From the IMG/VR virus record IMGVR_UViG_3300035182_002586, positions 434,001 through 498,000 of that record: a stretch of 64,000 bases of DNA; one strand, given 5' to 3'. The notes under the pieces were generated by a model. It made no database searches, was not told the DNA's origin, and saw nothing but the letters and a program-made list of their open reading frames with translations. How positions within the stretch are numbered: position 1 is the first letter of the stretch; the number at the start of each line of letters is the position of its first letter. The position numbers and the translations under genes were made by a program. This document shows, piece by piece, positions 1,094 through 61,957 of the stretch.

Positions 1094-1327
1094 CTAGACC
1101 GGATCCTCGTCAGCAATCCGCTCCCACAGCGTCTTGATCATCCCATCGGAGAGGTCGACGCGTGGGAGCAAGGGCTTCTCTCCGCCTTCGAGCTGCACGT
1201 AGTGGGCATCGAAGAGCCCGCCGACACGGCTCGTCACAACACCCGTCTGCCCTGCATGCTGGCCACCCGTGATGCGCACTCGCGTACCCACAGGAAAGCC
1301 CTCTGGTATCTCTCTGCCCGGCATCAT
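1094..1327 (-). CDS. KOW/SH3-like small protein with LWERI tail
   Basis: FPVGTRVRITGGQHAGQTGVV KOW motif; GGAGG SD; ends TLWERIADEDPV. Confidence 0.7.
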   Translation of the reverse strand: MMPGREIPEGFPVGTRVRITGGQHAGQTGVVTSRVGGLFDAHYVQLEGGEKPLLPRVDLSDGMIKTLWERIADEDPV

Positions 1328-1340
1328 CGTCACTGCCTCC

Positions 1341-1347
1341 GGTGTAC
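1341..1347 (+). promoter_or_regulatory. class B element GGTGTAC (leadered)
   Basis: upstream of GTG 1383. Confidence 0.4.
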
Positions 1348-1382
1348 CCATACCACACACCAAGTAGATCCTCGGAGGCCAC

Positions 1383-2183
1383 GTGATCACGTCGTGTCTC
1401 GCTACTGCCGGGTATGCCGCCAAGTTGCCCGCGCTCAAGGACCGCACGTTCACGTTCGGTCCCGGCCTCATCATTCTCTTCGGGCAGAACGGCTCGGGGA
1501 AGTCGACGTTACTGTCCATTCTCGCGAGCTACTCGGGGTGCTGGGAAGCTGGATGGACAGCGTTCTCTTCCAACTATGTGGGCTTCAACGACGCCCCGTT
1601 CCCGCACAGGCTCGCTACCCGTGGGAACCAAGCAGAGGTCGCGTGGGACGGCACCCCGAGCTTCTACAGCACGGGGCCCGAGTCCGGGCAGTCGGGGTTC
1701 AACAACGCCCTCGAAGACGGTGGTGAGGACGCGGACAACTACCTCCGGAGCCTCCTGGCTCCTGGTTCGGCAGGCCAAGGCCAGATCCAGTGGCTCAATC
1801 AGATGGAGAAGAAGCTCTCCGCGCCTCCGGATCTTCTCCGGGAAGACGGGACTCTACGCATACGTGGTCACGGTGAGGTCGAGAGGTCGAGCGTCAATAG
1901 CCTGTGGGGGGAGGCCATCGACGGCTTCCAGTCACACATCCGGTCGCTGCCCCACACGGGACCCGTGACGGTCCTTCTCGACGAACCCGACGCACACATG
2001 TCGCTGCCGAACCAGCACACCCTCTGGACGAAGGCCATCCCGCGCCTCTCCGTTGGGCGACAGGTCATCGTCGCCACGCACAGCGCATTCGCCCTATGCG
2101 CCCCGGACGCGACCATCATCGACCTCCAGCCGGGGTACGAGGATCGGTGCCGGAAGGTTCTTCGGGCTCTTCGCGAAGTCTGA
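1383..2183 (+). CDS. ABC/AAA-family ATPase (AAA_21-like)
   Basis: Walker A GQNGSGKST, Walker B VLLDEPD, H-loop IVATHS. Confidence 0.85.
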   Translation: MITSCLATAGYAAKLPALKDRTFTFGPGLIILFGQNGSGKSTLLSILASYSGCWEAGWTAFSSNYVGFNDAPFPHRLATRGNQAEVAWDGTPSFYSTGPESGQSGFNNALEDGGEDADNYLRSLLAPGSAGQGQIQWLNQMEKKLSAPPDLLREDGTLRIRGHGEVERSSVNSLWGEAIDGFQSHIRSLPHTGPVTVLLDEPDAHMSLPNQHTLWTKAIPRLSVGRQVIVATHSAFALCAPDATIIDLQPGYEDRCRKVLRALREV

Positions 2184-2210
2184 TGGATCGCTCCCCGCCT
2201 CGCATTGTAG
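2182..2210 (+). promoter_or_regulatory. class A promoter GATGGATC-N17-GTAG
   Basis: 7 nt to ATG 2218; overlaps upstream TGA stop. Confidence 0.8.
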
Positions 2211-2217
2211 GAGGGAC

Positions 2218-2565
2218 ATGGACACCAACACCACCCCCGCCGCCCCCGCTCTCGTCCGCTACCCCACCGACGGCCACACGCGTCCGCTGACGGTCGAGGA
2301 CATCACGGTCGGGCTCGTGACCCGTTACGTCATGTCCGACGGCGCGGTCGATCACTTCTCCGATTCCGTCATCACGAGCGTGGAGAAGAACGAGCACGGC
2401 CTGCTCTGCAAGATCGCTCGCCCCTACCTGCGGGTGACGCCGGACGGCACGCCGGTCGTGAGCTTCGAGAGTTACGAGGCGTACGCGCACCGACTCATCG
2501 AGCGCCACGTCGTGGTGATGTACTCGACGGGCAAGCCCGTGATCAACCTCGCGACGGAGAGCTGA
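2218..2565 (+). CDS. hypothetical protein
   Basis: ORF directly behind class A motif. Confidence 0.75.
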   Translation: MDTNTTPAAPALVRYPTDGHTRPLTVEDITVGLVTRYVMSDGAVDHFSDSVITSVEKNEHGLLCKIARPYLRVTPDGTPVVSFESYEAYAHRLIERHVVVMYSTGKPVINLATES

Positions 2566-2567
2566 AC

Positions 2568-2795
2568 ATGGCGAACACCCAAGTCGTTCGCGCACACCGC
2601 CTCGTCTTCGCGGTGCGTGACTGGAAGAACAACGGCGCCCTCGTCCCGCTTCGGACCCCGGGCCGCGAACCCTGGCCCGCTACGTGGGTCCGACGGGTCC
2701 CCGCCCTCTACGCGCTACACTCGGCCAACCAGTCGAGCCCCGGACGGTTCGCGCTGGTCACCCTGGACCTCGACAAACCCTACGCCGACGCATGA
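2568..2795 (+). CDS. hypothetical protein
   Basis: 75 aa ORF, tight packing. Confidence 0.7.
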   Translation: MANTQVVRAHRLVFAVRDWKNNGALVPLRTPGREPWPATWVRRVPALYALHSANQSSPGRFALVTLDLDKPYADA

Positions 2796-2796
2796 G

Positions 2797-3063
2797 ATGT
2801 CCTCTGCCCCTCCGCCCCCTCCAGTGTTCCACGCGATCTTCCCGGTCGCTGGAGCACTTCTCCAAGGGCATACCCTCCGTGTAAAGTCCCCTCCCTCCGA
2901 GGACGGGGGACCCTCAAAGGAAGTCGTGGCGGGGGAGGGCAAGGTCATCAACTGGTGCGGACAGATGATGCTCGAAGACGAAGACGCCTTCGAAACAGCT
3001 TGGCTCTTCATCGCGCTCGTAGGAACCGACGCCGCACTCCAGTCCGTCGAGGATGCCACCTAG
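2797..3063 (+). CDS. hypothetical protein
   Basis: ATG 1 nt after upstream stop. Confidence 0.65.
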   Translation: MSSAPPPPPVFHAIFPVAGALLQGHTLRVKSPPSEDGGPSKEVVAGEGKVINWCGQMMLEDEDAFETAWLFIALVGTDAALQSVEDAT

Positions 3064-3377
3064 TGAGGAGGCAGCGCGCGCCAAAGCACGACGACGCGCT
3101 TCATCACGTAGCCGGGGACAACACGGTCGGCCAGCACCACATCGGCCCCGTGCTCGAACAGATCGATCCAAGACTCGAACGCAATCGCCATGCGCCCCAA
3201 GTCGTGGCGTATCTCGTCCGCGTTCGCCGCAGTCATGACTTCCATCAGCTTGGCGAACAGCTCGGCGCGCAACAACACCCCGTGCTCATACGCCTCGAAG
3301 AGCTGCTTGGGTGTTCGTGTTTCCGCCACGACTGGGGGTTCGTAGAAGATGATCCTTGACCCCTGCTGCTGAGCCAT
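3060..3377 (-). CDS. hypothetical protein
   Basis: ATG abuts upstream TAG. Confidence 0.6.
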   Translation of the reverse strand: MAQQQGSRIIFYEPPVVAETRTPKQLFEAYEHGVLLRAELFAKLMEVMTAANADEIRHDLGRMAIAFESWIDLFEHGADVVLADRVVPGYVMKRVVVLWRALPPH

Positions 3378-3378
3378 C

Positions 3379-4005
3379 CTACGCCCCGACCCTCTCAAAC
3401 AGACGACCCCCAACTTGAGGGGCGCGCGCACGCAGCCGATCATCCGCAGTCAGCCACGTGTGGTTCGCCATCCGATAGAACTCGTTGGGGTTCGTTTCCA
3501 AGAGTAGCTTCTGCGCCAACATGTGATCTGGAGTCGGCACGTAGTCCCTAATGTGGACACAATAACGCGCCACGTCGATACCATCTTCCACGAGTACGAC
3601 GTTCATGGCAGAGCCACGCTCGATACGGAAGGTCCGTCCATCGGGGGCCCGAACGTGGAAGACGTTCTCCGCTGCGAGCTGCCGGCGGGCCTCTTCGTCA
3701 AGCAGGGCATCGAGGAGCCTCTCCGCCCGCGCCGTCGCTTGCCCCCACAGCTCTTCGCGGACTGCACGATCACGAGCCCGCAGTGCCTCGAAGTCCCGTC
3801 GTATGCCCTCGGGGAGCTGCCGGAAATGGAACAGGTCGATGGTCCACGCCCGCTCTTGGTCTCCACAGCCACAGGTGAACCCGAACCGCCGAGCGAACGC
3901 GAAGTCTTCCGTCCGACACCCCTCGTGAACGTGGTGCTCTCGGATTGCCTCTACCCACTCCCGTAGCGCCGGACGGAGTGCAGCCACACCAGGATCGTCG
4001 AACAT
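3379..4005 (-). CDS. conserved-looking hypothetical protein
   Basis: RAERLL..LL / YCVH..VP..DHMLAQKLLLE pattern; class B element upstream. Confidence 0.7.
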   Translation of the reverse strand: MFDDPGVAALRPALREWVEAIREHHVHEGCRTEDFAFARRFGFTCGCGDQERAWTIDLFHFRQLPEGIRRDFEALRARDRAVREELWGQATARAERLLDALLDEEARRQLAAENVFHVRAPDGRTFRIERGSAMNVVLVEDGIDVARYCVHIRDYVPTPDHMLAQKLLLETNPNEFYRMANHTWLTADDRLRARAPQVGGRLFERVGA

Positions 4006-4016
4006 CGCGAGGAGAT

Positions 4017-4032
4017 CTACACCACGGTGTAG
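4017..4032. promoter_or_regulatory. divergent class B pair TACACC-N2-GGTGTA
   Basis: 11 nt to ATG 4005 (-) and 8 nt to ATG 4041 (+). Confidence 0.7.
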
Positions 4033-4040
4033 GATGGAAC

Positions 4041-4886
4041 ATGACCCGTCTTGCTTGGGCCACCGACACGCATCTCGACCGCATGAACATGAAGCGGTTC
4101 CCGAGAGAGTTCGGCGCCAAGATCGCTGCGGACACCTCGGCGGAAGTCCTGCTCATCACCGGGGACATTGCCGAAGCGTCCACCTTCTCGAAGGCGCTCA
4201 TCGGCGTCTCGGAAGGGTTTGGGGGGCCCGTCTACTTCGTCCTCGGCAACCACGACGTGTGGGGGCAGAGCTTCGTGGACGCGCACCACAAGGCCGCGCG
4301 TCTGACGAGGAAGTACGAACGACTCACCTGGCTCACGGATGCAGGGGTCACCCTCCTGTCCGAGACGACCGCCCTCGTGGGGTTCGACGGTTGGTACGAC
4401 GCCAAGTGGGGTCCCACCAACCCCCCGAAGACACGCATGGGGGACTGGTCCAGGATCAAGGACTTCCAGCGCACTTGGAACCTGATGGCCATGACCTTCG
4501 AGGCGAGGGTCGACTTGATCATCCATCAGTGCCAGGAGAGGTGCGGCCTCATCGTGCAGTGGATCGAGAGGGACCTCCGGGCCGCGCTTGCCGTGCGGCC
4601 AAAGGTGGTGGTCGCCACGCACGTGCCGCCCTACCCGCAGAACGCCATCGAGCACATCGAGGGCAGGTCCGAAGAGGAAGACCGGTCCTGGCTCCCCTGG
4701 TACACGAACAAGGCGCTCGGGGACATGCTCCTGCGGGTCGCGGACGAGCACCCGGACCGGGAGATCCTCGTGCTCTGCGGACATGCACACGCCGAGCACA
4801 ACCACGAGGTTCTACCCAACCTGCGCGTCCGAACGGGGAAGGCCACGTACGGCGCGCCCTCGCTCGCCGGGGTGCTCGATTTGTGA
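4041..4886 (+). CDS. calcineurin-like metallophosphoesterase
   Basis: DTH, GDIAE, GNHD, THVPP, CGHAH motifs. Confidence 0.9.
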   Translation: MTRLAWATDTHLDRMNMKRFPREFGAKIAADTSAEVLLITGDIAEASTFSKALIGVSEGFGGPVYFVLGNHDVWGQSFVDAHHKAARLTRKYERLTWLTDAGVTLLSETTALVGFDGWYDAKWGPTNPPKTRMGDWSRIKDFQRTWNLMAMTFEARVDLIIHQCQERCGLIVQWIERDLRAALAVRPKVVVATHVPPYPQNAIEHIEGRSEEEDRSWLPWYTNKALGDMLLRVADEHPDREILVLCGHAHAEHNHEVLPNLRVRTGKATYGAPSLAGVLDL

Positions 4887-4913
4887 TGGATCGGAGAAGG
4901 GACCGCACGGTAG
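4885..4913 (+). promoter_or_regulatory. class A promoter (N17)
   Basis: 7 nt to ATG 4921; overlaps upstream TGA. Confidence 0.8.
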
Positions 4914-4920
4914 TAGGGAC

Positions 4921-5190
4921 ATGAGCCGCTCCCGCCTGATCCCGGTCACCGTCAACTTCGTCACCGACAACGGCTATTGGACCCCGAGCGAGTGGCGTAC
5001 GCGTTCGACCCGTCAGGGTGGCTACAGCCACGGCAAGCCGACCCTGGAGAACCTCCAGAAGTACGTCGCAGATGCCGAAGCGGCGACGCAGCCCGGAGGC
5101 GTGAACGCCCACCTCGGTCCGACCAAGATCCTCAAGGCGTGGATCATCGACCAGCGCTCGGGCGAGAAGCTCGTGGAGTACACGGCATGA
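4921..5190 (+). CDS. hypothetical protein
   Basis: ORF behind class A motif. Confidence 0.75.
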   Translation: MSRSRLIPVTVNFVTDNGYWTPSEWRTRSTRQGGYSHGKPTLENLQKYVADAEAATQPGGVNAHLGPTKILKAWIIDQRSGEKLVEYTA

Positions 5191-15217: not shown

Positions 15218-15526
15218 ATGCACCCGATCGACGCCATGCTCATCCGGTCAGGCTTCGCGCCCGTTGGGGACGGCGACCGGTTCATCCGCGTGACCGATGA
15301 CGGTGTTCGCATCATCGTGGCGAGCGGAGTCGTGGCCGGCGAGCCCGTCCGAGACACCGCCGTCGTCCGCGTGGAGCGCGTGCGCCCGGGTTGGACGGAG
15401 ACGTGCTTCCGCCGTACCGTCTCGGTCGGTTCGGCCAGCGACAACCAGATCACGTCACTCCTGAACCTGATGCGCTACGCCTGGCAGTTTGCCCGCGCGG
15501 TGGCGAAGAAGGACCACCATGTCTGA
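15218..15526 (+). CDS. hypothetical protein
   Basis: ORF behind class A motif. Confidence 0.7.
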   Translation: MHPIDAMLIRSGFAPVGDGDRFIRVTDDGVRIIVASGVVAGEPVRDTAVVRVERVRPGWTETCFRRTVSVGSASDNQITSLLNLMRYAWQFARAVAKKDHHV

Positions 15527-15791
15527 CCTTCGGTTCATGACCGACAAGAACGTCGGGTGGGAACGTGTGTGGAACCTCATCGCGCACACGTTTGGGTCCT
15601 TCGACTGTCTAGAGAACAACGAGGTCTGGCAGTACATGGGCACGACAGAGCGGGAGCACCAGTTCCGTCACCGCTCGTTCCGTGGCCAGCGCAAGTACCA
15701 CAACATCGCGATCGACCCCCACGACTTCGACACGCCCCCCGAAGAGCCCGCCCCGACCCTGTGGGAACGCCTGGAGGAGCCCCTTTTCTGA
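15519..15791 (+). CDS. hypothetical protein with LWERL tail
   Basis: ends PPEEPAPTLWERLEEPLF. Confidence 0.75.
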   Translation: MSDLRFMTDKNVGWERVWNLIAHTFGSFDCLENNEVWQYMGTTEREHQFRHRSFRGQRKYHNIAIDPHDFDTPPEEPAPTLWERLEEPLF

Positions 15792-21060: not shown

Positions 21061-21366
21061 GTGACGAAGACCGCAGCGGAAGCGGAGGAGCGGCGCGCGT
21101 GGGAGTGGATCCACGCGCAGTGCGAAGCGCACGGGGTTACGTGGAAGACTCTCAGCCTGGCAGAGCAGCGAGACCTTACGCGAGCGATCCCCTGCAACCT
21201 CCGATGCTGGAGGGTCGGAGGTGCGGTCGACACGACCCCCGGGCAACCCTGCCCCGAGTGCGGCCGCCCGGTTCCACACCTCTCGCTGTGGGAGCGTCTG
21301 GTGGATGACGAGCACGGACCGATGGATCCCCACGTTCTACGCACGGTAGATGGACGGGAGATCTAA
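21061..21366 (+). CDS. zinc-ribbon protein with LWERL motif near C-terminus
   Basis: CNLRC, CPECG, HLSLWERLVDDEHGP. Confidence 0.7.
   Translation: MTKTAAEAEERRAWEWIHAQCEAHGVTWKTLSLAEQRDLTRAIPCNLRCWRVGGAVDTTPGQPCPECGRPVPHLSLWERLVDDEHGPMDPHVLRTVDGREI
21321..21349 (+). promoter_or_regulatory. class A promoter (N17), leadered
   Basis: embedded in 3' end of upstream ORF; GGGAG SD then ATG 21369. Confidence 0.7.
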
Positions 21367-22112: not shown

Positions 22113-22595
22113 ATGATGCCCCGGCTGACGGAGAACGTCGCCCACCCCCTCTCCACGTTCAAGCGCTGCCAGCTCTGTGGCTTCGAGGGTCACCGGGACA
22201 TCTGCGAGTTCCGCATGTGGGTCGAGTGCGACGAACAGGACAAGCCCGAGCCGGGCAACGTTCTGGTCGTCTGCCGTGGGGAAGCGTGCCGGAAGGCCAT
22301 CAGCGACCACCCACGGCTCTACATCGAGGTACCGTGGGGCGAGGGCCTCCCCGGGCACTTCATGCTCCTGTGCGGCGACTGTGCCTTCCGGAAAGGGGTT
22401 GGCTGCACGCACCCCGACCTCAAGTCGAACGGGGGCGCCGGGTTGAAGGTCAGCATCGGCGGGCCCTTCTCAAACGTCCGGGTGTGCTTCTCGGACGGGA
22501 CCTCCAGCACGGGGCCGCACCCGGCTGTCGAATGCATCGGGCAGACGGCGATCCCGCCGCCCTCCGTGTGGGAGCGCCTCGGGGAAGACCTCTAA
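22113..22595 (+). CDS. Cys-rich hypothetical protein with VWERL tail
   Basis: CQLCG, CGDC; ends IPPPSVWERLGEDL. Confidence 0.75.
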   Translation: MMPRLTENVAHPLSTFKRCQLCGFEGHRDICEFRMWVECDEQDKPEPGNVLVVCRGEACRKAISDHPRLYIEVPWGEGLPGHFMLLCGDCAFRKGVGCTHPDLKSNGGAGLKVSIGGPFSNVRVCFSDGTSSTGPHPAVECIGQTAIPPPSVWERLGEDL

Positions 22596-24428: not shown

Positions 24429-26483
24429 CTACGAGGCGCCGTTGGTCGGCGTCGCCGGGGTCTTCTTGCCGACCTCGGCGCGGATCTGGTTCCGCAGTGC
24501 CTCGGTCTCCGGGCTCCGCTTGGGGGCCGCCGAGAGCACCGTGTCAGCCGCGAACTTGTCCGACATCACCATCGTCAGCAGAGTCTCCAGGATGCCCGAG
24601 CCCTGGCCGTTCTGACTCCCGACGACGATGCGAGGCACCACATCGACCTTCGACTCACGGATGGCGTTCGAGAAGCCCTCCATGACCTGCTGAGTGAGCT
24701 GGAACTTCGGACCACCGTAGGCAGCCACCTGCTCCTCGATCGCCACGGCCTGCGCGATACCGACGCGTGCAGCCCGGTCCGCCTCGGCTTCGGCGAGGTA
24801 GCGAACCTTGTCCGCTTCGGCGCGCGCCATCGCGCGAACCTTGTCGGCCTCCGCTTCTGCCATCGCACGGATCTGCGAGGCCGTCTGAATCGACCGCTGG
24901 TACTGCGCCTTGCCCTCGTTCTCCTGCGTCCGGATGGAGATCTCGGACTCGGTGAGCTGCTGCTGAGCCCTCGAAACCGCCTCGGCCTCGCGAAGCGCGC
25001 GTTCCTTCTCCGCAGCCTTCTGCTGGCGGTCGTAGGTGCCGATCTGCTCTTCGGCGATCTGACGCGAGCGGAGCTGCGTCAGGATGGTGCCGATCTGCTT
25101 GTCGTTGTCGTCCGGCGACGGCGTGCCGATGAGGACCTCTTCCAGCTCCAGGTTGTACTGCGCGAACTTGGCCTTCATCCCCACGGCCGACTCGCTCTGG
25201 ATCTCGCTGCGCTCCTGAATGAGCTGGATCAGCGTCCGGGTCTGCGCCACGTTCTTGAAGTACGCGCTGACCATCGGGTCGAGCGTCTGGTTCACGAGGC
25301 GCTGGATGTCACCGAAGCGCTGGACAACGAGCGGCGCCTTGCGGTAGTCGATGTGCACGACAACCGAGAGCGGCAGCCAGGGCTCGAACGCGTCCTTGGT
25401 GATGAGCCCGACCTCGCAGAGGTTCTCGTCGAACTTGTGAGCAGACACTTCCGTCTCTTCCCACTTGAGGATGAAGTTCGTGGTCGGGACCGTGACGATC
25501 TTCCCGGCGTACGTGTTGAACGCGTACTTGCCCGGCATCAGAGCCTCGTCCCACACGCCGCGCTGACCCTTGCGAACCAGCTCCCCGTGCGAGTAGTCCG
25601 ACCCCGAGAGGTCCGCGCCCGCCTCGCCCGTGTAGGAGACTACGACGCCGACCGTGCCGACCTCGATGACCGTCTTGGGGATCAGCTCGACCGTCGCGAA
25701 GAGCCGGTTGATGTAGTAGGTCCCGTCGACGAGCACCTGCATCTGGCGCCCACGACGGCCGCCCGCAGCCAGGAAGAGCAGAGGGTCCTGGAAGTTGTTG
25801 TGGTAGGAGGGCTTCTCCGGATCCTCTCCGACGAGCGGGGCGATCACGTCCCCGTGGGAGAGACCCGGGCCGTCGTGCACGGTCACGACCCCGATCTTGT
25901 CGTCCGTGCCCCGGATCACGATCGGCTTGAAGCCATCACGCTCCCGGATGATGGTCGACATCTTCTCCAGCTCGTGCTTGTCATTCGACAGGCTCAGCCC
26001 ATACACCTCGTCCTCGGTGAAGACCGCGAAGAGGGCCGGGTTGATGGCGTACGTCCCCTCACGGAGGATCGTCATCTGCGGGCCCCGCTGACCTCCCCCT
26101 GCGAGGAACGCCCGAGCATCCCCGTAATTGGCGCACCCCACCACGCATCCTGCGAGGGTCTGCGTCGCTTCGAGCTGCTTGCCGTCGCGCGCGAAGACGT
26201 AGCCGATCTTGCCCTGCGGCACGGTGACCAGCGGCGCCTTGTGGACGCGGTACTGAATCGGCGTGAGCCAGTGGATGCCGCCACGGAGCATGTCGGGCTG
26301 GTAGCCCGCCTCGCCCCCGAGGGCCATGAAGCCGCTCTTGACGGAGCCCTTGCGTGACCACCGTTTCTCAACGACGGCCACGCGATTGTTCGGGATGACT
26401 CGTACCCCTGAGAGGAGCACAAAGAAGACGAGGAGGCCCAAGGCCACCTCGATGAGGAATGCCGGTTCGGGCAGGTGGTGCAT
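24429..26483 (-). CDS. SPFH/band 7 flotillin-family membrane protein
   Basis: N-terminal TM, LITKDAFE..LP.SVVVHID SPFH core, AEA/EAE coiled coil. Confidence 0.85.
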   Translation of the reverse strand: MHHLPEPAFLIEVALGLLVFFVLLSGVRVIPNNRVAVVEKRWSRKGSVKSGFMALGGEAGYQPDMLRGGIHWLTPIQYRVHKAPLVTVPQGKIGYVFARDGKQLEATQTLAGCVVGCANYGDARAFLAGGGQRGPQMTILREGTYAINPALFAVFTEDEVYGLSLSNDKHELEKMSTIIRERDGFKPIVIRGTDDKIGVVTVHDGPGLSHGDVIAPLVGEDPEKPSYHNNFQDPLLFLAAGGRRGRQMQVLVDGTYYINRLFATVELIPKTVIEVGTVGVVVSYTGEAGADLSGSDYSHGELVRKGQRGVWDEALMPGKYAFNTYAGKIVTVPTTNFILKWEETEVSAHKFDENLCEVGLITKDAFEPWLPLSVVVHIDYRKAPLVVQRFGDIQRLVNQTLDPMVSAYFKNVAQTRTLIQLIQERSEIQSESAVGMKAKFAQYNLELEEVLIGTPSPDDNDKQIGTILTQLRSRQIAEEQIGTYDRQQKAAEKERALREAEAVSRAQQQLTESEISIRTQENEGKAQYQRSIQTASQIRAMAEAEADKVRAMARAEADKVRYLAEAEADRAARVGIAQAVAIEEQVAAYGGPKFQLTQQVMEGFSNAIRESKVDVVPRIVVGSQNGQGSGILETLLTMVMSDKFAADTVLSAAPKRSPETEALRNQIRAEVGKKTPATPTNGAS

Positions 26484-26493
26484 GGGCGCGGTG

Positions 26494-26500
26494 GTACACC
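26494..26500 (-). promoter_or_regulatory. class B element GGTGTAC
   Basis: 10 nt to ATG 26483. Confidence 0.6.
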
Positions 26501-26521
26501 GAGTCCACCCCGAACGAGGCC

Positions 26522-27631
26522 CTACTTTCCCTTGCCGAGGAACTCCTTGATCGAGGGGAGGATCGCATCGCGGTCTGCGATCTGGCTCAGGGTCACCCGA
26601 TCGTCGTCGGGGAATGCCGTTCGGAGGTCCTTGTAGAACTGCCCCGACCCGTACGGAGAATCGACCTGTCCGTACGAGAACACGTTCACGACGGGCAGGA
26701 GGCGATCGCGCAGGACCTTGATGCAATCCTCCGTGTCCTCAGTCGACCAGTTGTCCCCGTCGGAGAAGTGGAAAGGGTAGATGTTCCACGAAGATGAGGG
26801 GTAGTCCTTGTCGATGATCTTCATGCACAGGTCCAGAGCCGACGAGATCCTCGTCCCTCCAGACTCGCGCGTGTGGAAGAACGTGTGCCGGTCGACCTCG
26901 CGCGCCTCTGCGTCGTGGGTGATGAACCGGGTCTCGATGCCCTTGTACTGACGTCGGAGCCAGAGGTCGATCCAGAAGGACTCCAGGCGGACGATCTCTT
27001 TCTGGTCGTCGCCCATCGAGCCCGACACGTCCATCATGTAGATGACGACGGCCTGCGCCTGCGGCTTGAGGGTGATGTCCGGCGCGCGGTAGCGCCAGTC
27101 GTCTCGCACGGGCATGAGCACGGGCTGGTCGGGGTTGTAGTCCCCCGACGAGATGGCGCGCTTGAGCGTCTCCTTGTAGCTGCGCTTCATGTGGCGCAGC
27201 GACCCGGGCCCCACTCTGGAGATCCCCGTGTACTTGTTCGAGTCCTGGATGATGTTCTCTTTGCCCTTGTTCTCGATCTTCGGGAGTTGGAGTTCGTCTC
27301 CGAGCATGTCGGCGAGTTCATCCATGGAGATGTCCGCCTCGATCCCGTGCTTGTCCGTGTCCTTGCCGGCCTTCTTGCCCTTGCCCTTCTGGTCCGGGTC
27401 GCCGCCCACGGGATCGCCTACGTCCCCATCCCCCTGTCCTGCGCCCCCCGCCTGCTTGTCACCGTAGACGAAGCGCGGCATGTCGATCTGAGGGATCGGC
27501 ACGGACACGACATCCTTGCCGACGCGGCCGAGAAGCTCCCCCGAAGAGATGTACTTCGAGAGGTTCCCGCGCACCTTCTTGCGGATGATGTCCTTGAACC
27601 TCGAATGGTCTGCGCCGATGCGATTCGACAT
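26522..27631 (-). CDS. yeaH: YeaH/YhbH family (DUF444) protein
   Basis: DHSRFKDII, MMDVSGSM, SGGT.ISSA, NIYPFHFSDGDNW. Confidence 0.9.
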   Translation of the reverse strand: MSNRIGADHSRFKDIIRKKVRGNLSKYISSGELLGRVGKDVVSVPIPQIDMPRFVYGDKQAGGAGQGDGDVGDPVGGDPDQKGKGKKAGKDTDKHGIEADISMDELADMLGDELQLPKIENKGKENIIQDSNKYTGISRVGPGSLRHMKRSYKETLKRAISSGDYNPDQPVLMPVRDDWRYRAPDITLKPQAQAVVIYMMDVSGSMGDDQKEIVRLESFWIDLWLRRQYKGIETRFITHDAEAREVDRHTFFHTRESGGTRISSALDLCMKIIDKDYPSSSWNIYPFHFSDGDNWSTEDTEDCIKVLRDRLLPVVNVFSYGQVDSPYGSGQFYKDLRTAFPDDDRVTLSQIADRDAILPSIKEFLGKGK

Positions 27632-32924: not shown

Positions 32925-33335
32925 ATGACCTGCGAGCACCTGACCGGCTGCCACAAGAACTCGAAGGGCGATCGCGTCTGCAACGGCTGTGGTCTTGTGA
33001 ATCCCCGCCGGCACTCGTGGCGGGGCCGCAAGCACGACGTGAAGTGCCGCCACTGCGGGATGGTCCGCAAGCACCTCGGGGGCGGCGTGTGGGCCTGCCA
33101 GACCAAGGACGGCAAAGCCCTCGTCGGAAGCGTGCACGAGTGCCCGCCAGAGCCCGAGGTGTGCGGGGACAAGGTGATCGTCGCCGACGGTGAGCAGGTC
33201 ACGTGCTCCCTGGAGAAGGATCACCCGGTCGTGGGCATCGACAACGGCAAGACCCGCAAGTACCAGTTCCACCAAGGTGGCGAGTGGGTGTGGGACGAGA
33301 AGTGCGCCTGGAAGAAAGGCGAGGAACCACGATGA
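32925..33335 (+). CDS. Cys/His-rich hypothetical protein
   Basis: multiple CxxC. Confidence 0.7.
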   Translation: MTCEHLTGCHKNSKGDRVCNGCGLVNPRRHSWRGRKHDVKCRHCGMVRKHLGGGVWACQTKDGKALVGSVHECPPEPEVCGDKVIVADGEQVTCSLEKDHPVVGIDNGKTRKYQFHQGGEWVWDEKCAWKKGEEPR

Positions 33336-34072
33336 ACGCCGTGTTCCGCATCGTCCGTTGGGTGCTCGGCCAGTTGTGGGAGAAGATCAACCTCCCGGCC
33401 ATCTACCGGGAGCTGCGCGCCCTCGGCAAGAAGCACGGCAAGCGGTTCTTCTGGGCGGCGCTCATCTGGGAGCTGATCGAAGATGTGCTCTTCCCGTACC
33501 TCTCGTGGCTCGCCGGGATGCCCGAGCTGATCCCCCTCTTCCTCGTGCTCCACTTCGAGCCCATCGTCTACCCCGTCTTCTTCTGGGCCTTCCGCACGTA
33601 CGACCGCTACAAGGACCGCGAGCCATGGGAGCCGGACCGCAGCGCGCAGTCGAGCCACTGGCGCTCGGCCGTGAAGGTCGGTGTATACAAGGTCGCCTCG
33701 CTCGGGTGGTTCACCGCCGTCTTCCTCGCGTGGCACGCGACGCCGAAGATGCTCGTCCTGTACGCCGTCCTGATGGCCCTCTTCGGGTTCATCCACGAGC
33801 GCATCTGGCACGACTCGAACTACGGGATCCTCCCGAACGATGTGGTTGAGGTCCGCCGAATCACCATGAAGGCCCTCACGTACCGCATCGTGTCGACGAT
33901 GATCTTCTACCCCTTCCTTCGCGCCACCCTCGGGACGGTGCCCTGGAAGCTCCTCCTGCTCTGCCAGGGAGTCGGGCTCGTCCTCTACATCGTCCTCGAA
34001 TCCGTGTGGGCGCGCTCCATGTGGGGCTGCTCCCCCGTCTCGCAACCCAAGACTGAGGAAGTGCCATGCTGA
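33332..34072 (+). CDS. membrane protein with tandem DUF2061-like repeats
   Basis: SHWRSAVK..YK...IHERIW and RRI.MKALTYRI...LESVW. Confidence 0.6.
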   Translation: MNAVFRIVRWVLGQLWEKINLPAIYRELRALGKKHGKRFFWAALIWELIEDVLFPYLSWLAGMPELIPLFLVLHFEPIVYPVFFWAFRTYDRYKDREPWEPDRSAQSSHWRSAVKVGVYKVASLGWFTAVFLAWHATPKMLVLYAVLMALFGFIHERIWHDSNYGILPNDVVEVRRITMKALTYRIVSTMIFYPFLRATLGTVPWKLLLLCQGVGLVLYIVLESVWARSMWGCSPVSQPKTEEVPC

Positions 34073-36920: not shown

Positions 36921-36937
36921 GGACGGAGGACTGAACC

Positions 36938-37216
36938 ATGAGCTACGACCCCGACGAGGACTACGACGACGAGGACTACGACGACGAGGACTACGACGAC
37001 GAGGATGCGGGCGACTTCGACCTCGACGACGAGGACGACCGCTCGATGTTCGCCGACCCCGGTGGCAAGAGCGCCCTGCGCGCGGCGACCCCGGACAACC
37101 CCCGGGACCTCCCGTGCCCGACCTGCCACCAGCCGGACAAGCTCACGCCCGCCGACAAGGCGCTCGGCTACCAGTGCGACGACTGCGCCGACCGGGCCGA
37201 GGGCGGGGGCTATTGA
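36938..37216 (+). CDS. acidic-N-terminus zinc-ribbon protein
   Basis: (DYDDE)n then CPTC...CDDC. Confidence 0.75.
   Translation: MSYDPDEDYDDEDYDDEDYDDEDAGDFDLDDEDDRSMFADPGGKSALRAATPDNPRDLPCPTCHQPDKLTPADKALGYQCDDCADRAEGGGY
36961..37005 (+). repeat. 15-bp tandem repeat x3
   Basis: CTACGACGACGAGGA x3. Confidence 0.9.
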
Positions 37217-45436: not shown

Positions 45437-45790
45437 GTGTCGTTCGAGGATACCCTCACGGACGACAACCCACTGGCCGACGAGACCATCAGCGAGGGTG
45501 AGCTGGAGGTCTACCTGTCCGTGTTCCTCGGCGATCTGTTGACCAAGCTGGACCCCCGCGAGCGAAACGTCGTCGACCGTAGGTTCACGGACAACCCCGA
45601 AACACTCGAAGAGATCGCCAACAGCTTCGGCCTGTCGCGGGAGCGCGTCCGTCAGATCGAGGAGCGCTGCCTGAACAAGATCAGGGACGCCATGGCGAAA
45701 GGCGGCCACTTGGGCGTCCCGGGGACCTGGCGCATCGGCCTCGACGACTGGCCCGTGGTCATGGACAAGATGACACTGGTGGGGGAGTGA
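45437..45790 (+). CDS. stand-alone sigma70 region 3.2-4 (HTH) protein
   Basis: LDPRERNVVDRRF...TLEEIANSFGLSRERVRQIE..CL.KIR. Confidence 0.85.
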   Translation: MSFEDTLTDDNPLADETISEGELEVYLSVFLGDLLTKLDPRERNVVDRRFTDNPETLEEIANSFGLSRERVRQIEERCLNKIRDAMAKGGHLGVPGTWRIGLDDWPVVMDKMTLVGE

Positions 45791-48372: not shown

Positions 48373-48400
48373 GATGGATCGGGGCCGGGTCGCGTTGTAC
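48373..48400 (+). promoter_or_regulatory. class A promoter GATGGATC-N16-GTAC
   Basis: 7 nt to ATG 48408. Confidence 0.75.
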
Positions 48401-55180: not shown

Positions 55181-55323
55181 CCACCAGGGTCCAGGTCACC
55201 GTCTTCGGCGCGGCGCTCCTCGGAGCCCTGTGGTTCGGCTTCGCTGGACACCCGGTCCCCACTGCCGTCTGCATCGCCATCGCGTACTACACGAAGGAAG
55301 CACCCGTCGAGGATGAGGAGTGA
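55177..55323 (+). CDS. small membrane protein (48 aa)
   Basis: ATGA/TGATG overlaps; hydrophobic; not in ORF track. Confidence 0.55.
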   Translation: MTTRVQVTVFGAALLGALWFGFAGHPVPTAVCIAIAYYTKEAPVEDEE

Positions 55324-55712
55324 TGCGCCACTCATTCTCCTACCGCTTCACCCACCTCGTGACCGGGCCCTTCCCGTTCGAGTACTGGACCTGGACAGGC
55401 AAGTCCGGCGCTCACGCGTGGAGCCGACCCAACGCCCTGTCCGCCACGATGAAGATCGCCTTCCCGAGGCACACCATCACCGGAAGCCCCACCGACGTTC
55501 GCGCCCGCTACGATGACGCGATCGCACACCTCCCCCGAGGCGTACGGACAACGATCACCGGGATCAGGGACAACGATAACGGCTCGATCGACCTCGGCAC
55601 CATCGCCTGCGTGCAGGACGTTGATCTCACCGAGGACGAGTGCCCCTTCTGGTTCGAGCCACCGGAGCCTCAACCCCTGTGGGAGAAGCTCCTCGTGGAC
55701 GACCCGTTCTAG
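55323..55712 (+). CDS. hypothetical protein with LWEKL tail
   Basis: ends EPPEPQPLWEKLLVDDPF. Confidence 0.75.
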   Translation: MRHSFSYRFTHLVTGPFPFEYWTWTGKSGAHAWSRPNALSATMKIAFPRHTITGSPTDVRARYDDAIAHLPRGVRTTITGIRDNDNGSIDLGTIACVQDVDLTEDECPFWFEPPEPQPLWEKLLVDDPF

Positions 55713-57458: not shown

Positions 57459-57460
57459 CG

Positions 57461-57763: not shown

Positions 57764-57768
57764 AACCG

Positions 57769-57797: not shown

Positions 57798-57831
57798 CTA
57801 AGGCAGGTCGCGCATCCACACGAGGTTACCC

Positions 57832-58497
57832 ATGAACGTGTCTGTTCTTCGCCCCGAGGTGTCGAAGGTCGCCGTGAAGGTCGCGCTGCAAGGCGTCGCA
57901 GCGGAGGGCTTCAAGTACGACGCCCATCTGGTCGATCTCGTGCGCCGGAACACGACCATGCGCGGCCGGCAGGTGCAGTTCGGGCTCGACGCTCTCCGCC
58001 GTACGACCCGTTGGGCGCAAGTCGCCACGGGGATGAGCACGATCTTCGAGGAGGGGGTCAGCTCTCAGGACGCGCGTGACCGCTTCGAGGCCATCCGCGA
58101 ACGCCCGAACTACTACTTCATGGTGACGAACTACCTCGGGCGCCAGGCGACCAAGAAGGGAACCACCGCCCCGAACGAGAAGCTCCTGACGGCCGAGCAG
58201 GCGTGCACGATCCTCGGCCTCAAGTGGGGCATGTGGAAGAAGCGCATGTGGCGGTTCCACAAGGGGGAGCCCAACACCTACAAGAAGGACGACCGCCGCC
58301 GCTTCACCGGTTGGATGCCCACGCCAGTGGAAGGGGCCTACCTCTCCAAGAAGGCGCTGTTCACGGCCGCCGACATCGCCAGGGTTCAGCGCCTCCATGG
58401 AGGTAAGGATCCGACTGTCGAGGTGAAGGTGACGCCGGAGAACGATGTCGAACCCGCCCCCAAGGCTTGGCCGCGCGCGGCGCGAGGAGGCCGGTGA
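57832..58497 (+). CDS. putative DNA-binding protein with excisionase/MerR-like HTH
   Basis: LLTAEQACTILGL...FTAADIAR. Confidence 0.6.
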   Translation: MNVSVLRPEVSKVAVKVALQGVAAEGFKYDAHLVDLVRRNTTMRGRQVQFGLDALRRTTRWAQVATGMSTIFEEGVSSQDARDRFEAIRERPNYYFMVTNYLGRQATKKGTTAPNEKLLTAEQACTILGLKWGMWKKRMWRFHKGEPNTYKKDDRRRFTGWMPTPVEGAYLSKKALFTAADIARVQRLHGGKDPTVEVKVTPENDVEPAPKAWPRAARGGR

Positions 58498-59186
58498 TGA
58501 AAAGCCCCCGTCCGCGTCTCCACCTGAAGGACGACGACTTCCGCGCCCTTCGCCACATGGCCATCGACACGGACCGCACGGTCGGTGACCTGGTGGCCGA
58601 AGCGATCCAGCTTCTCTTCAAGCACCACAACTACGTGTGGGGGCAGACGAAACCTGAGAAAACGACCACACCCGCGAGCTGCGGCTCGACCCCGAAGAAG
58701 GGAGTTCGACCGATCGGCCGCCCGCGTCGGGCCCTCAACACCCCTCCGGAAGGGATCGAAGTCGAGCGCGTCCGACTCGGGTTGTCGAAACGCGAACACG
58801 CGAAGAAGATCGGGATCCCGATCGCAACGTACCTGGCCGCAGTGCAACGCGAAAGTGTAACGCCTGTGGTCACCGAGAAGCCCAACAAGGCTCCGGTCAC
58901 CGAGAAGCCCAACAAGGCTCCGGTCACCGGAATCTCCCTGGAGACGTTCGCGAAGCGACGTGGCGTGCCCGTGTCGCAGATCGTCAAAGAGGGCCCGGAC
59001 GCGCCGCTCAAGATTCGGTCGAAGACGACGGGACGGTGCCTCACGACGAAGGGTGAGTGGGCAGACCTTCATCGCAGGACCATCGTGCTGACGACGGCGC
59101 AAGAAGCCGAGGAGTTCGTGAAGAGCGTCTTCGGGGAGTTGAGTGGTACGTCGGACGTGGAGATCGTTCCGGTCTACGCCAACTGA
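58494..59186 (+). CDS. multi-domain regulator: RHH + AT-hook-like + XRE-like HTH
   Basis: LHLKDDDFRALRHMAIDTDRTVGDLVAEAI; IGRPRR; RVRLGLSKREHAKKIGI. Confidence 0.65.
   Translation: MMKSPRPRLHLKDDDFRALRHMAIDTDRTVGDLVAEAIQLLFKHHNYVWGQTKPEKTTTPASCGSTPKKGVRPIGRPRRALNTPPEGIEVERVRLGLSKREHAKKIGIPIATYLAAVQRESVTPVVTEKPNKAPVTEKPNKAPVTGISLETFAKRRGVPVSQIVKEGPDAPLKIRSKTTGRCLTTKGEWADLHRRTIVLTTAQEAEEFVKSVFGELSGTSDVEIVPVYAN
58869..58929 (+). repeat. 27-bp tandem repeat x2.3 (VTEKPNKAP)
   Basis: GTCACCGAGAAGCCCAACAAGGCTCCG repeated exactly. Confidence 0.9.
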
Positions 59187-59189
59187 TCG

Positions 59190-59217
59190 GATGGATCGCC
59201 ACCGACTCACGCTGTAG
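59190..59217 (+). promoter_or_regulatory. class A promoter (N16)
   Basis: 7 nt to ATG 59225. Confidence 0.8.
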
Positions 59218-59224
59218 TAGGAAC

Positions 59225-59563
59225 ATGACCCCCGAAACCGCCCGCGCTGCCGTCGCCCTCTTCGTCAAGGCCGCCGAGACCCGCCTCTGCCACGAACCCG
59301 ACGAGGAGACCCGCGAGATCGAAGGCAAGAGCATGATGCGCATCAGCGCAATGCTCGTCCCGTACAACAAGGCGAAGGTCGACCGTCTCTACGTGTGGCT
59401 GACCGACGAAACCATCACGGTCCAGGTCGCCGGCCAGACCCCTTCCCCCGAAGGCGCCGAGTACGGCTTCACCTCGGTCTCGGCCAAGGCCGAGACCAAC
59501 GCCCAGTTCGACGCCGCCGGGCTCTGCCAGTTCTTCCTCGCCCTCGCCAAGGGGATGCGCTGA
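59225..59563 (+). CDS. hypothetical protein
   Basis: behind class A motif. Confidence 0.75.
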   Translation: MTPETARAAVALFVKAAETRLCHEPDEETREIEGKSMMRISAMLVPYNKAKVDRLYVWLTDETITVQVAGQTPSPEGAEYGFTSVSAKAETNAQFDAAGLCQFFLALAKGMR

Positions 59564-59883
59564 TGCCCGCCGAGATCCGCATCGTATACAAGCGCCCGGG
59601 TTGCCTCGCGGACGTGCAGTTCGTCGAGAACTCCCTCCAGGGGTTCCGCGCCCTGCTCGACGGCGGACACATCGAGTTCATCCGCCTCCGCGAGTACGGC
59701 CAGGGCATCCACGGGTACGCGGACGAGGAAGGACGCCTCAAGGACCTGCCCTACAACCTCGACGTGGACGGCGAGCCCATCGTCGGCCCCATCTTCTTCT
59801 CGAAGGGTGACGGCGAAGGGGAAGACATCGGCTTCGAGGATGTCGAGGAAGCGTTCGCCCTCTGCCGCTTCCTCAACGCCTGA
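59563..59883 (+). CDS. DUF3846 domain protein
   Basis: NSLQGFRALLDGG.IE...DEEGRLK.LP.N...IVGPIFF. Confidence 0.8.
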   Translation: MPAEIRIVYKRPGCLADVQFVENSLQGFRALLDGGHIEFIRLREYGQGIHGYADEEGRLKDLPYNLDVDGEPIVGPIFFSKGDGEGEDIGFEDVEEAFALCRFLNA

Positions 59884-59910
59884 TGGATCGCTCCGTCCCT
59901 CATGCTGTAG
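59882..59910 (+). promoter_or_regulatory. class A promoter (N17), leadered
   Basis: overlaps upstream TGA; AGGAGGT SD before GTG 59939. Confidence 0.75.
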
Positions 59911-59938
59911 AGGAAGGGGATAAACCAGGAGGTGTGCT

Positions 59939-60412
59939 GTGGGAGGAAAAACCGTAGGAGACTGGGGCCAGGCACACAGCCGAGCACGCAACGCGCGAGA
60001 GTCCAACGACACCAAGGTCGAAGCCGCCCTTCGGGAGAAACGGGACGCCGAACGCTCCGTTGCTCTGATGCACATCAAGTGGATCCTCGAATCCCCCTAC
60101 GTGACCGATCCGGCGTGGGTCATCAGGATTCGTACGAACCTCTTGGAGAACCCAACCCTGGTACCAGCCCGGAGGGAGCAAGTCGCCCTCGAACGCCTCT
60201 TGTTTTCGTTGCACCTCCGGGATTTGAACGGAGGCGAGAGCAAGCCGCGTTCCCCCGAAGAGGTCGAAGCTGCTAGGGCGAAACGCCGCGCTCTCGTCGC
60301 TGCCGTGCAAGAGAGGGGCAAGTTTCGAGAGAAGATCAATCAAGCCGCCTTCCGCCCACAAGGGGAGCCACCGCCCAAACCACCCCGCAAAGTCTCTGTG
60401 GGTGACTACTGA
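59939..60412 (+). CDS. hypothetical basic protein
   Basis: 157 aa, lower GC. Confidence 0.65.
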   Translation: MGGKTVGDWGQAHSRARNARESNDTKVEAALREKRDAERSVALMHIKWILESPYVTDPAWVIRIRTNLLENPTLVPARREQVALERLLFSLHLRDLNGGESKPRSPEEVEAARAKRRALVAAVQERGKFREKINQAAFRPQGEPPPKPPRKVSVGDY

Positions 60413-60439
60413 CGGATCGCACCACCCCCAGCAGTGTTA
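60411..60439 (+). promoter_or_regulatory. degenerate class A copy GACGGATC-N17-GTTA
   Basis: overlaps upstream stop; GAGGAG SD before ATG 60459. Confidence 0.4.
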
Positions 60440-60458
60440 CCTGTGAGGAGAACCCCCG

Positions 60459-60677
60459 ATGCTGACCGTAGGGATGCGCGTGATCTATGAGCAGCCGGGC
60501 CACCGCCGGGAGACCGGCGTGCTGCTTCGCCTCATGGGAACAATGAGTTGCGAGATTCGCACGGACCGCTGCGCCTCTGACCCCAAGGGATGGCCGATCC
60601 CTTGGAGGACGCTCACCCTCAACGTCAACCGCGCCTTCGTGAGGCCGGAAGCGTCGAACTACCCGAAGGCAGGGTAG
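60459..60677 (+). CDS. small SH3-like hypothetical protein
   Basis: LTVGMRVIY...TGVL. Confidence 0.6.
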   Translation: MLTVGMRVIYEQPGHRRETGVLLRLMGTMSCEIRTDRCASDPKGWPIPWRTLTLNVNRAFVRPEASNYPKAG

Positions 60678-60691
60678 GCGGAGATCGAACC

Positions 60692-61525
60692 ATGAAACCG
60701 ACTTTGAACCTACCCTCGCTAGCGGCCGCTCTGCGCATTCACCCCACACACGCTGCTCACCTTGTGAGGGCGATGAGGGCGATGAGGGCGGGAACAAGTC
60801 AAGTGGCTGCCCTCGCCGACGAGATCGAGAGGGTGGCGCAACGCCGGAGTCCGCGGGAATCGATCAGCGTAACGCCTCCGCGACCAACAAGGGGACCCGA
60901 AGAACGGGAGTGGCGCCGACTGTACGCGCGTACGAGTGAGGCCCGAAGTAACAACCTTACCCGCAAGGCCGCCGCTGCCATGCGGTTTGACTACAACGAC
61001 GGCGACTCGCAATACGAAGCGTTCTGCAAGCGTTTCGGCTACGGTTCAACCGAAGAGGTGTTCCGCGCCGCTATTCGCCCGTGGGAGATCGGTTGGCGCG
61101 GTGTGGAAGTCGGAAATGTCCGGTTCGGCAAGCTGGAAAAACCACTGAGCCCGACGATGCCCCCGTCTCGTCGATCCAATACACCCGTCGACTTCTACCG
61201 GTTGCTGTACCTCACGAAGCCGGTAGGTGTCTCGTTCGACGACATGTACGGTCAGTCGATCTGTGGGTTCACGAGCCCGTGCCGTCGTTTCGCTATGGCC
61301 TTCTACTTCCACAAGTATGAGCTTGCAGCCTACCAATACGTCCGCAAAGACCTTGCTGTACGTACGCGTGAACTGCGCGGGCAGTTCATCATTCAGTCTG
61401 GTATCCCGGGCGTCGACAATGGTGTCAATACGAACGACGTCGACGCGAAACGATGGTTCCGAATGGTAGCTACCGCTATGCGCCGAAAGTGGAAGGTCTA
61501 CCCGGGTAACAACTTCGACATATAA
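60692..61525 (+). CDS. hypothetical protein (lower-GC island)
   Basis: 277 aa, weak codon bias. Confidence 0.7.
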   Translation: MKPTLNLPSLAAALRIHPTHAAHLVRAMRAMRAGTSQVAALADEIERVAQRRSPRESISVTPPRPTRGPEEREWRRLYARTSEARSNNLTRKAAAAMRFDYNDGDSQYEAFCKRFGYGSTEEVFRAAIRPWEIGWRGVEVGNVRFGKLEKPLSPTMPPSRRSNTPVDFYRLLYLTKPVGVSFDDMYGQSICGFTSPCRRFAMAFYFHKYELAAYQYVRKDLAVRTRELRGQFIIQSGIPGVDNGVNTNDVDAKRWFRMVATAMRRKWKVYPGNNFDI

Positions 61526-61624
61526 CCGCGAACTGATCGAGGCCCAAAGGAAGTGACGATGTGAACAGGTGCACCGCTGCACCGCAATCACTTCAAGTGC
61601 CTGTCGCCGAACGAGAGCTGAAAC

Positions 61625-61957
61625 ATGAGCCTAGCCCGCCACTGGATCATCCCCGGAGAAGTCACGCAAGAGGAGTTCGACTTCCTCGCGCACAGGCTAG
61701 GCGTCGTCTTCCCCGACCTCGGCGGGAAGTTCGAGCGCAACGCCCTCCAGAAGATGGTATGGGAAGTCGACCTCGACGAAGAGGACGCTCGGCGTGGTCA
61801 CAACCTGAGCCGGGAGGTGAAGGTCGACCTCACGGTCCGACTGCGCAACAGCGCGCTCGCGAACCTCGTCGCCTACCGGAACCGGACGCCCGGAGCCATC
61901 CCGAAGGCCGAGCACATCACCCTGTGGGATCGCATCCTCAAGGACGACGGACTCTAG
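61625..61957 (+). CDS. hypothetical protein with LWDRI tail
   Basis: ends AEHITLWDRILKDDGL. Confidence 0.75.
   Translation: MSLARHWIIPGEVTQEEFDFLAHRLGVVFPDLGGKFERNALQKMVWEVDLDEEDARRGHNLSREVKVDLTVRLRNSALANLVAYRNRTPGAIPKAEHITLWDRILKDDGL

Follow-up and report, generated by a model that had tools for sequence, protein, structure and literature searches.

Tagged proteins of the window

The stretch of DNA analysed here, called the window below, comprises the 64,000 nucleotides at positions 434001-498000 of the IMG/VR virus record IMGVR_UViG_3300035182_002586 (528,957 bp). It has a G+C content of 64% and carries about 140 genes, mostly small, tightly packed and predominantly on the plus strand. Our subject is a short peptide with a Leu-Trp-Glu-Arg-Leu core that closes six of the encoded proteins and that the initial annotation of the window had proposed as a docking or targeting tag. 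All six tails were found in the window sequence exactly as they had been quoted. The six open reading frames (ORFs) are also genes in the public Joint Genome Institute (JGI) annotation of the source contig, with slightly different starts for two of them (15537 and 22116), and we reject a gene-calling artefact as the source of the tails.

An identical sequence is present on a 620,031-bp JGI metagenome contig, Ga0373636_0000001 of 3300035182; the IMG/VR record lacks the first ~90.6 kb of that contig, which was possibly trimmed as non-viral. The label of huge phage rests on the IMG/VR classification, the gene content and relatives found on contigs of 186-536 kb. GenBank phages gave no near DNA match to the window and no tblastn match for a carrier. 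We read about 92 kb (~15%) of the 620-kb genome, where no virion genes were seen, plus about 32 kb of a second phage, and gene starts are our own calls wherever JGI calls were lacking. Few domains could be recognised in the window: metallophosphatase, SPFH, DUF444, radical SAM, RNA ligase, NADAR and a sigma-70 protein consisting of region 4 only.

The leftmost tagged gene (1094..1327) lies on the minus strand, which the initial annotation had left unstated, and encodes a KOW-like protein of 77 amino acids (aa) ending in TLWERIADEDPV (JGI L204 5132-5365). Its tag, KT-LWERI-ADEDPV, is encoded at 1097..1135, and its match to the KOW family of Pfam scores 21.6 bits, marginally below the cut-off of 22.3. 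The other five genes are on the plus strand. An ORFan of 84-90 aa (15519..15791; JGI start 15537), for which no family was found, ends in PTLWERLEEPLF, with the tag PT-LWERL-EEPLF encoded at 15753..15788 after the linker TPPEEPA. A 101-aa protein with four Cys, resembling a zinc ribbon (21061..21366), carries SLWERLVDDEHGP followed by 15 more residues, and its tag, LS-LWERL-VDDE, is encoded at 21280..21312. The Cys-rich protein at 22113..22595 (159 or 160 aa; JGI start 22116) ends in SVWERLGEDL, the tag PS-VWERL-GEDL being encoded at 22560..22592 after the linker TAIPP. A second, JGI-called ORFan of 129 aa (55323..55712), whose sole database match is itself, ends in PLWEKLLVDDPF, with QP-LWEKL-LVDDPF encoded at 55671..55709 after the linker EPPEP. 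Finally, a 110-aa protein (61625..61957) ends in TLWDRILKDDGL, with the tag IT-LWDRI-LKDDGL encoded at 61916..61954.

A six-frame scan of the 64 kb with the expression [LVIM]W[ED][RK][LIVM], which was defined after the data had been seen, gave seven matches, every one in a coding frame. Five of the seven lie 4-6 aa from the stop and a sixth at 21 aa, while the seventh is internal. When the residues of the 140 called proteins were shuffled, 0.26 matches were expected against the seven observed, and within 22 aa of the C-terminus 0.05 were expected against six. The terminal enrichment on which the tag proposal had been staked is thus present. Since the expression is post hoc, it is the independent recurrence of the tail in other loci, described below, that removes chance as an explanation. 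The internal match, GQ-LWEKI-NLP (33374..33388, plus strand), stands near the N-terminus of the product of gene 33332..34072 and has neither the Pro-Thr/Ser cap nor the acidic tail nor a C-terminal position; we reject it as a chance match. A possible degenerate seventh tag closes a 208-aa protein encoded on the minus strand at 3379..4005, which ends in GGR-LFERV-GA, with Phe in place of Trp and without Pro-Thr or an acidic tail. The Phe variant PTLFERL was found in the second phage, and this end may be a decayed copy of the tag, for which it is a weak candidate.

Conservation and gain of the peptide

With their tails cut off, the carriers have no significant pairwise similarity by blastp or phmmer, so that their bodies are unrelated as far as can be detected, just as had been claimed, and a larger shared C-terminal domain is rejected. 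Pfam and PHROGs profiles gave no convincing family for any carrier; the KOW match remained just below threshold and the zinc-finger matches were weak. The Cys-rich protein at 22113..22595 belongs to a family that is widespread in huge-phage-like contigs, with 65 database matches. The body of this family ends at a conserved C-x-G motif and the window copy alone runs on, with TAIPPPSVWERLGEDL; the tail is absent from the other 64, more distant homologues (at most 62% identity). This lineage has thus attached it to a protein that already existed.

The tail persists in closer relatives. The orthologue of the 61625..61957 protein (P0067, 71% identity) ends in IPTLWDRLKGDDDL, and two orthologues of the zinc-ribbon-like protein, both in conserved gene order, do likewise: P0070 (59% identity) ends in VQTLWERLLDNAHDPMDPSPSRAVEGT, the tag standing there within VQTLWERLLDNAHDPMDP, and P0071 (62% identity) ends in VPTLWERLLDDG. 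The tail is thus retained at 59-71% identity although the linker diverges, which answers a second test that the initial annotation had set for its own proposal. Such tails were absent from ~56 kb of three more distant relatives; the 536-kb contig 3300009031_000221 is among the relatives free of the tag. The generic marks of a modular short linear motif are all found here, namely non-homologous bodies, a linker context, conservation in orthologues and independent gain and loss. The tail is a lineage-specific add-on, and we are highly confident that it is a functional module at the level of the protein.

The codons of the tail bear on the level at which it is maintained. In the window, Glu and Asp are specified by GAG, GAA and GAT, and Arg and Lys by CGG, CGC, CGT and AAG. 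Across 22 copies the first Leu is CTG, TTG or CTA (with Ile, Val or Ala in its place in some copies), Glu is encoded by GAG or GAA, the Arg position is CGN, AGR or AAG, and the last Leu uses six different codons. When three orthologues of the zinc-ribbon-like protein are compared, all codon differences within the motif are synonymous. With codons free to vary and the peptide constant, it is the peptide that is under selection, and both the synonymous variation and the protein-level selection that had been read from the window hold. A feature of the DNA translated by accident, such as a repeat, a recombination boundary or a regulatory site, would find some support in the several copies of the core CTGTGGGAGCG and in the genuine repeated DNA motif that this genome has at gene starts. 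However, nearly all synonymous codons are used across the 22 copies, the amino acid substitutions are conservative, and what is conserved is the reading frame and the placing of the tail with respect to the stop. Further, a repeat search did not return the tails as a family, save for a three-copy 31-nt family (D19, 71% identity) that overlaps the tail at 55677. The reading as a DNA repeat is effectively excluded.

Tails of the same type occur outside the window. In a scan of IMG/VR with a degenerate DNA pattern the matches listed were mostly noise, yet they included two further loci. One lies on the window's own contig, 16 kb past the window (L097), where a 326-aa protein ends in EPALSLWERLGEDE and a 226-aa protein in PPSVWDRISDDPDL. 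The other lies on a different contig, of 182 kb (L122), where PTLWERL-type tails end 10 of about 14 consecutive, partly overlapping genes that form one 14-kb operon. Two loci on contigs from the same sample (L063 and L134) hold four further tails. In all, the second phage contributes at least 13 tails on two contigs, IMG/VR 3300028920_000027 and _000035. The proteins common to the window phage and this second phage, represented by L122, L063 and L134, are only 28-30% identical. Among the matches listed in the metagenome scan, the short soil contig L260 gave one convincing extra member, ending in PPPPPEVYRPTLWERLATDD, and several other matches were rejected as off-frame GC-rich ORFs.

From 26 examples we built the consensus P-[TS]-L-W-[ED]-R-[LI]-x-[DE]-[DE], in which x is mostly a small residue. 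Pro is present in 17 of the 26, Thr or Ser in 24, the first Leu in 20, Trp in 23, Glu in 23, Arg in 25 and the second Leu in 21. Pro makes up 21% of the ten residues before the motif against a background of 6%, which makes the linker Pro-rich. After the motif, Asp and Glu together account for 40% of residues (background 11-13%) and Lys and Arg for 3%; untagged C-termini are 11% acidic and 17% basic. The net charge and isoelectric point of the carriers show no trend. The motif stands 0, 2, 3, 4, 5, 6, 9, 11, 14, 19 or 21 aa from the stop, and this variable distance argues that the motif itself is recognised and not the free C-terminus.

A locus search by tail alignment matched 34 stretches, about the number expected by chance, and confirmed the query's own locus alone. 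In a leave-one-out test, a hidden Markov model of the tail gave scores of 12-27 bits, below the reportable E-value for a library of 1.84 billion proteins, and a search of the ESM Atlas with the tail alone was uninformative. Separately, an unrelated coiled-coil phage family in IMG/VR (~50% G+C) ends in RSLWERI(R/M)NK(F) (L341 6355-6789, L345 6532-6879, L363 7001-7480); it shares the LWERI core at the C-terminus, but its tail is basic and there is one copy per locus.

In the product of 21061..21366, 21 residues follow the core motif. The extension (21313..21363) is the in-frame translation of the motif that precedes the ATG of the next gene, so the description of this end as a promoter-derived tail was apt. 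One orthologue has the same read-through and another terminates just past the tag. The extension is a by-product, and a tag followed by it shows that the motif need not be at the very end of the protein. The loss of the extension from one orthologue, with the motif unchanged, also counts against a nascent peptide that would act in cis within the ribosome, by arrest or termination, and so regulate the downstream gene. A conserved Trp near the stop is known from TnaC-type arrest peptides, and several tagged genes run into or directly adjoin the gene that follows, but arrest requires a fixed spacing to the peptidyl-transferase centre and here 0-21 codons separate the motif from the stop. We regard an arrest peptide as effectively excluded.

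The gene-start motif itself, ATGGATC(G)-N15-17-GTAG(W)(R)GG-N3-ATG, spans ~38 nt and occurs in at least 17 copies, on the plus strand only. Strict copies are at 2183, 4886, 13424, 15183, 23042, 23539, 31555, 34257, 36139, 43795, 45790, 46133, 48374, 49627, 51972, 56723 and 59191, and looser copies at, for example, 21321, 56241, 57769 and 59883. In 16 of the 17 strict copies the final ATG is exactly that of a called gene; the ATG that ends the copy at 48374 has no called gene. The motif is conserved in two relatives (L325 and L327). It looks like a phage-specific promoter box combined with a Shine-Dalgarno element, or like a "start-associated sequence", an element that has been described in cluster K mycobacteriophages.

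The tagged genes are not spread evenly over the source contig. Every match on it falls within the last 95 kb, according to three complete pattern scans and the matches listed in a fourth. The pattern of one of these scans covers three of the eight known tags, and even spacing would have given ~14 matches in the other 434 kb, where none was observed. In the second phage the tagged genes are also at contig ends. This suggests that the tagged genes occupy a variable accessory arm, although the ends of metagenome contigs are often assembly breaks.

Proposed docking and comparison with known systems

An AlphaFold2 model of the 22113..22595 protein, computed from a 57-homologue alignment, has a predicted local distance difference test (pLDDT) score of 92 and places residues 152-159 (VWERLGED) in a terminal helix with a pLDDT of about 83; no match for its fold was found in PDB or BFVD. 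With P-[TS]-x-x-E the motif has the classic N-cap (capping box) of a helix. The peptide most likely forms a two-turn helix with Leu, Trp and Leu on one face.

We propose that a lineage-specific C-terminal motif is attached, through a Pro-rich flexible linker, to many unrelated small accessory proteins. Thr/Ser and Glu would form the N-terminal capping box of a helix that presents Leu, Trp and Leu on one face and is trailed by acidic residues. This helix would plug into a hydrophobic groove of one common receptor, and a variable arsenal of proteins would thereby be gathered at one place. The receptor would be one that the phage itself specifies, not a universal hub of the host, and the preferred destination would be the assembling prohead, for co-injection. 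We put the probability of this explanation, the best overall, at roughly 60%. Its component claims differ in strength. A linker-borne conserved peptide that is gained and lost independently and is restricted to a lineage has the signature of a docking or address motif, and the tag probably does serve for docking or addressing at one receptor. The suggestion that its carriers are bound for the virion or another container built by the phage is tentative, the capsid in particular being inferred by analogy. We are just as tentative about a heptapeptide sorting code, resembling peroxisomal targeting signal 1, that would load an operon-sized and rapidly diversifying set of more than 20 unrelated effectors into the capsid or another phage-built compartment, to be delivered to the next host.

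The T-even internal proteins are diverse, share only a capsid-targeting sequence (CTS) and are delivered to the scaffolding core (PMC3012670). As with the tag, a short terminal peptide is the sole shared feature of diverse, rapidly evolving small accessory or defence proteins, and the genes of CTS-bearing proteins in T4 are likewise clustered in variable regions. The T4 CTS, of about 10 aa, stands at the N-terminus and is cleaved off by the prohead protease, whereas the tag differs from it in sequence and is found at the C-terminus in every case. By this analogy the T-even internal proteins are the closest phage precedent, although the tag does not belong to their family.

The cargo peptides of Family 1 encapsulins are C-terminal, follow a flexible linker and bind a pocket of a shell with the HK97 fold, which is the capsid fold of tailed phages; their consensus is SDGSLGIGSLKRS (PMC8346489). 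The tag resembles them in being short, C-terminal, placed after a flexible linker and carried by unrelated proteins, but their consensus is unlike PTLWERLxDD, and encapsulin cargo genes adjoin the shell gene whereas the tagged genes are scattered in the accessory arm. No Pfam family of encapsulin shells or capsids was seen in the annotated loci (about 92 kb, ~15% of the genome). Judged by format, the encapsulin cargo peptide is the closest structural counterpart, and again the tag is not a member. The encapsulation peptides of bacterial microcompartments (BMC) target enzymes into a shell by means of a terminal amphipathic helix of ~18 aa with a weak consensus, on a poorly conserved linker. A terminal amphipathic helix borne on a linker by unrelated proteins is common to them and, as predicted, to the tag; BMC shell domains were absent from the Pfam annotation of the loci read. 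In eukaryotes, the W-x-x-L of the LC3-interacting region or Atg8-interacting motif, and the LWKLL of p53 on MDM2, insert Trp and Leu into two hydrophobic pockets, with acidic flanks. The tag follows the same grammar of L-W-x-x-L and acidic residues, a likeness in physical chemistry only.

The analogies originally offered for the tag were the tail of the single-stranded DNA-binding protein (SSB) and the clamp-binding motif. Taken as statements of family membership they do not hold: the tag neither follows a terminal Pro-Phe rule nor contains QLxLF, and its distance from the C-terminus varies. The SSB tail (DDDIPF) and the tails of T7 gp2.5 and gp4 are, like the tag, flexible and acidic, then hydrophobic, and two window tails end in DDPF and EEPLF. 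Those docking tails sit on a hub that has many partners, and their terminal Phe and carboxylate are essential; here the upstream PTLWERL is what is conserved, the ends vary and the tail is on many proteins. Just two of the 26 examples end in Pro-Phe or Leu-Phe, the remainder closing with V, L, E, G, D, P, A or other residues. The β-clamp motif QL[SD]LF and the PCNA-interacting (PIP) box are also short, often C-terminal and bring many proteins to one hub. Nevertheless, Gln is found at the required position in none of the 26, the hydrophobic pattern differs, and clamp clients are enzymes of DNA metabolism whereas the tag carriers have no such domains.

In a search for counterparts among cellular organisms, one genome per species from 185,579 bacterial and archaeal species was scanned with P[ST]LWERLx[DE] in a narrow form (CTG/GAG codons). 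Most of the 67 matches come from an alpha/beta-hydrolase family of Solirubrobacterales and relatives (L136-L201), where they fall in an internal helix, LGTGALPSLWERLGEL, and the remainder are scattered and internal. A strongly conserved internal segment of this hydrolase, LRGLGTGALPSLWERLGEL, accounts for most of the bacterial matches; we take the Solirubrobacterales enzyme to be MenH-like, and reject the excess in this order (PSLWERLGEL, internal) as a tag or as a clue to the host. A family of C-terminally tagged host proteins was not found in this narrow-pattern scan, which is a weak negative. Full-text searches of the literature, both for the peptide and for phage motifs comparable to it, returned nothing relevant.

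These results bear on the alternative that the tail recruits its carriers to a hub such as the host RNA polymerase, sigma region 4, SSB, the clamp, the ribosome or a phage equivalent of these. The motif is near-invariant between phages whose shared proteins are 28-30% identical, as would be expected for a slow-evolving target. The tagged genes also stand among small early-like genes, with a sigma-70 region-4-only protein encoded nearby, several carriers resemble nucleic-acid binders (KOW-like and zinc-ribbon-like), and the ends DDPF and EEPLF recall SSB tails. On the other hand, neither QL[SD]LF nor DDDIPF fits the tag, given its rare terminal Phe and its spread of 0-21 aa from the stop, and no recognisable enzyme domain of DNA or RNA metabolism is present on any carrier. 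More than 20 different non-enzymatic clients would be out of the ordinary for a hub of the replisome or of RNA polymerase, and the lack of a bacterial family with the C-terminal tail in the scan counts for a receptor specified by the phage. Overall we consider recruitment to such a hub unlikely; as a docking target, a conserved host machine is nearly as likely as a phage-specified receptor.

A C-terminal tag on a flexible linker is also the usual format of a bacterial degron, and a common tag on many short-lived proteins would coordinate their turnover. The tail might in that case mark an early or accessory cohort for timed removal by a protease or an SspB-like adaptor, and a weak SspB-like protein is indeed encoded by a distant relative. 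That relative, however, shows no such tails, and the parts of the genome that were read showed neither a protease nor an adaptor. Known degrons need their last residues and a free carboxylate (as in LAA), while the ends here are variable, mostly acidic and 0-21 aa from the motif; none of the 26 ends in AA, as an ssrA-like degron would. We judge a shared degron improbable.

Only two protein families were found to be common to the two tag-using phages, at 28-30% identity. One comprises the product of 62600..63298 (minus strand), which adjoins a tagged gene, and L063 10695-11399; the other comprises the product of 3379..4005 and L134 2-1759 (E=1e-14). Considered as candidates for the partner of the tag, the two window proteins gave no family, PDB match or useful Atlas neighbour.

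Several points weigh against a phage-specified receptor that loads the prohead. The receptor was not found in the about 92 kb of the 620-kb genome and the ~32 kb of the second phage, and no capsid, scaffold or protease genes were seen near the tagged genes. These stand instead among small, same-strand, early-looking accessory genes, a setting that suits host-takeover proteins docking on a host machine at least as well. The near-invariance of the motif at 28-30% protein identity is easy to explain by a slow-evolving host target, and a narrow DNA pattern with CTG/GAG codons could miss tailed host proteins. Also, the viral identity of the contig depends on the IMG/VR classification and the gene content.

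Neighbouring genes and significance

Several other features of the region were recorded. An SPFH/Band-7 protein of 684 aa is encoded beside a DUF444 (YeaH-like) protein on the minus strand (24429..27631), an odd pair for a phage; no close relative of the DUF444 protein, which was considered as a candidate partner of the tag, was found in IMG/VR. In the 117-aa product of 45437..45790, sigma-70 region 4 makes up nearly the whole protein (Pfam E=6e-18), which could be a decoy or an adaptor for the host RNA polymerase. A protein of 92 aa (gene 36938..37216) has N-terminal DYDDE repeats, encoded by a 15-nt tandem repeat at 36930..37034. On the JGI contig, some 5 kb past the right end of the window, lies the gene of a TnpB/Cas12f-like protein of 767 aa (L202 3150-5453), with a D12-class methyltransferase and a MUG113-family protein encoded near it.

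Of the hundreds of genes without known function in huge phages, the tag joins at least 20 into one functional cohort, and its peptide offers an experimental handle, as bait for the receptor. Should the tagged proteins be bound for the virion or a phage compartment, a set of injected or compartmentalised effectors would be readable from sequence; if packaging proves true, the tag would be a previously unseen protein-addressing system that could be reused for loading foreign proteins. Should they go to a host hub, the tag would point to the machine that these phages take over. In either case it is a rare clean case of short-linear-motif evolution in bacterial viruses, with gain, retention in orthologues and spread over unrelated proteins.

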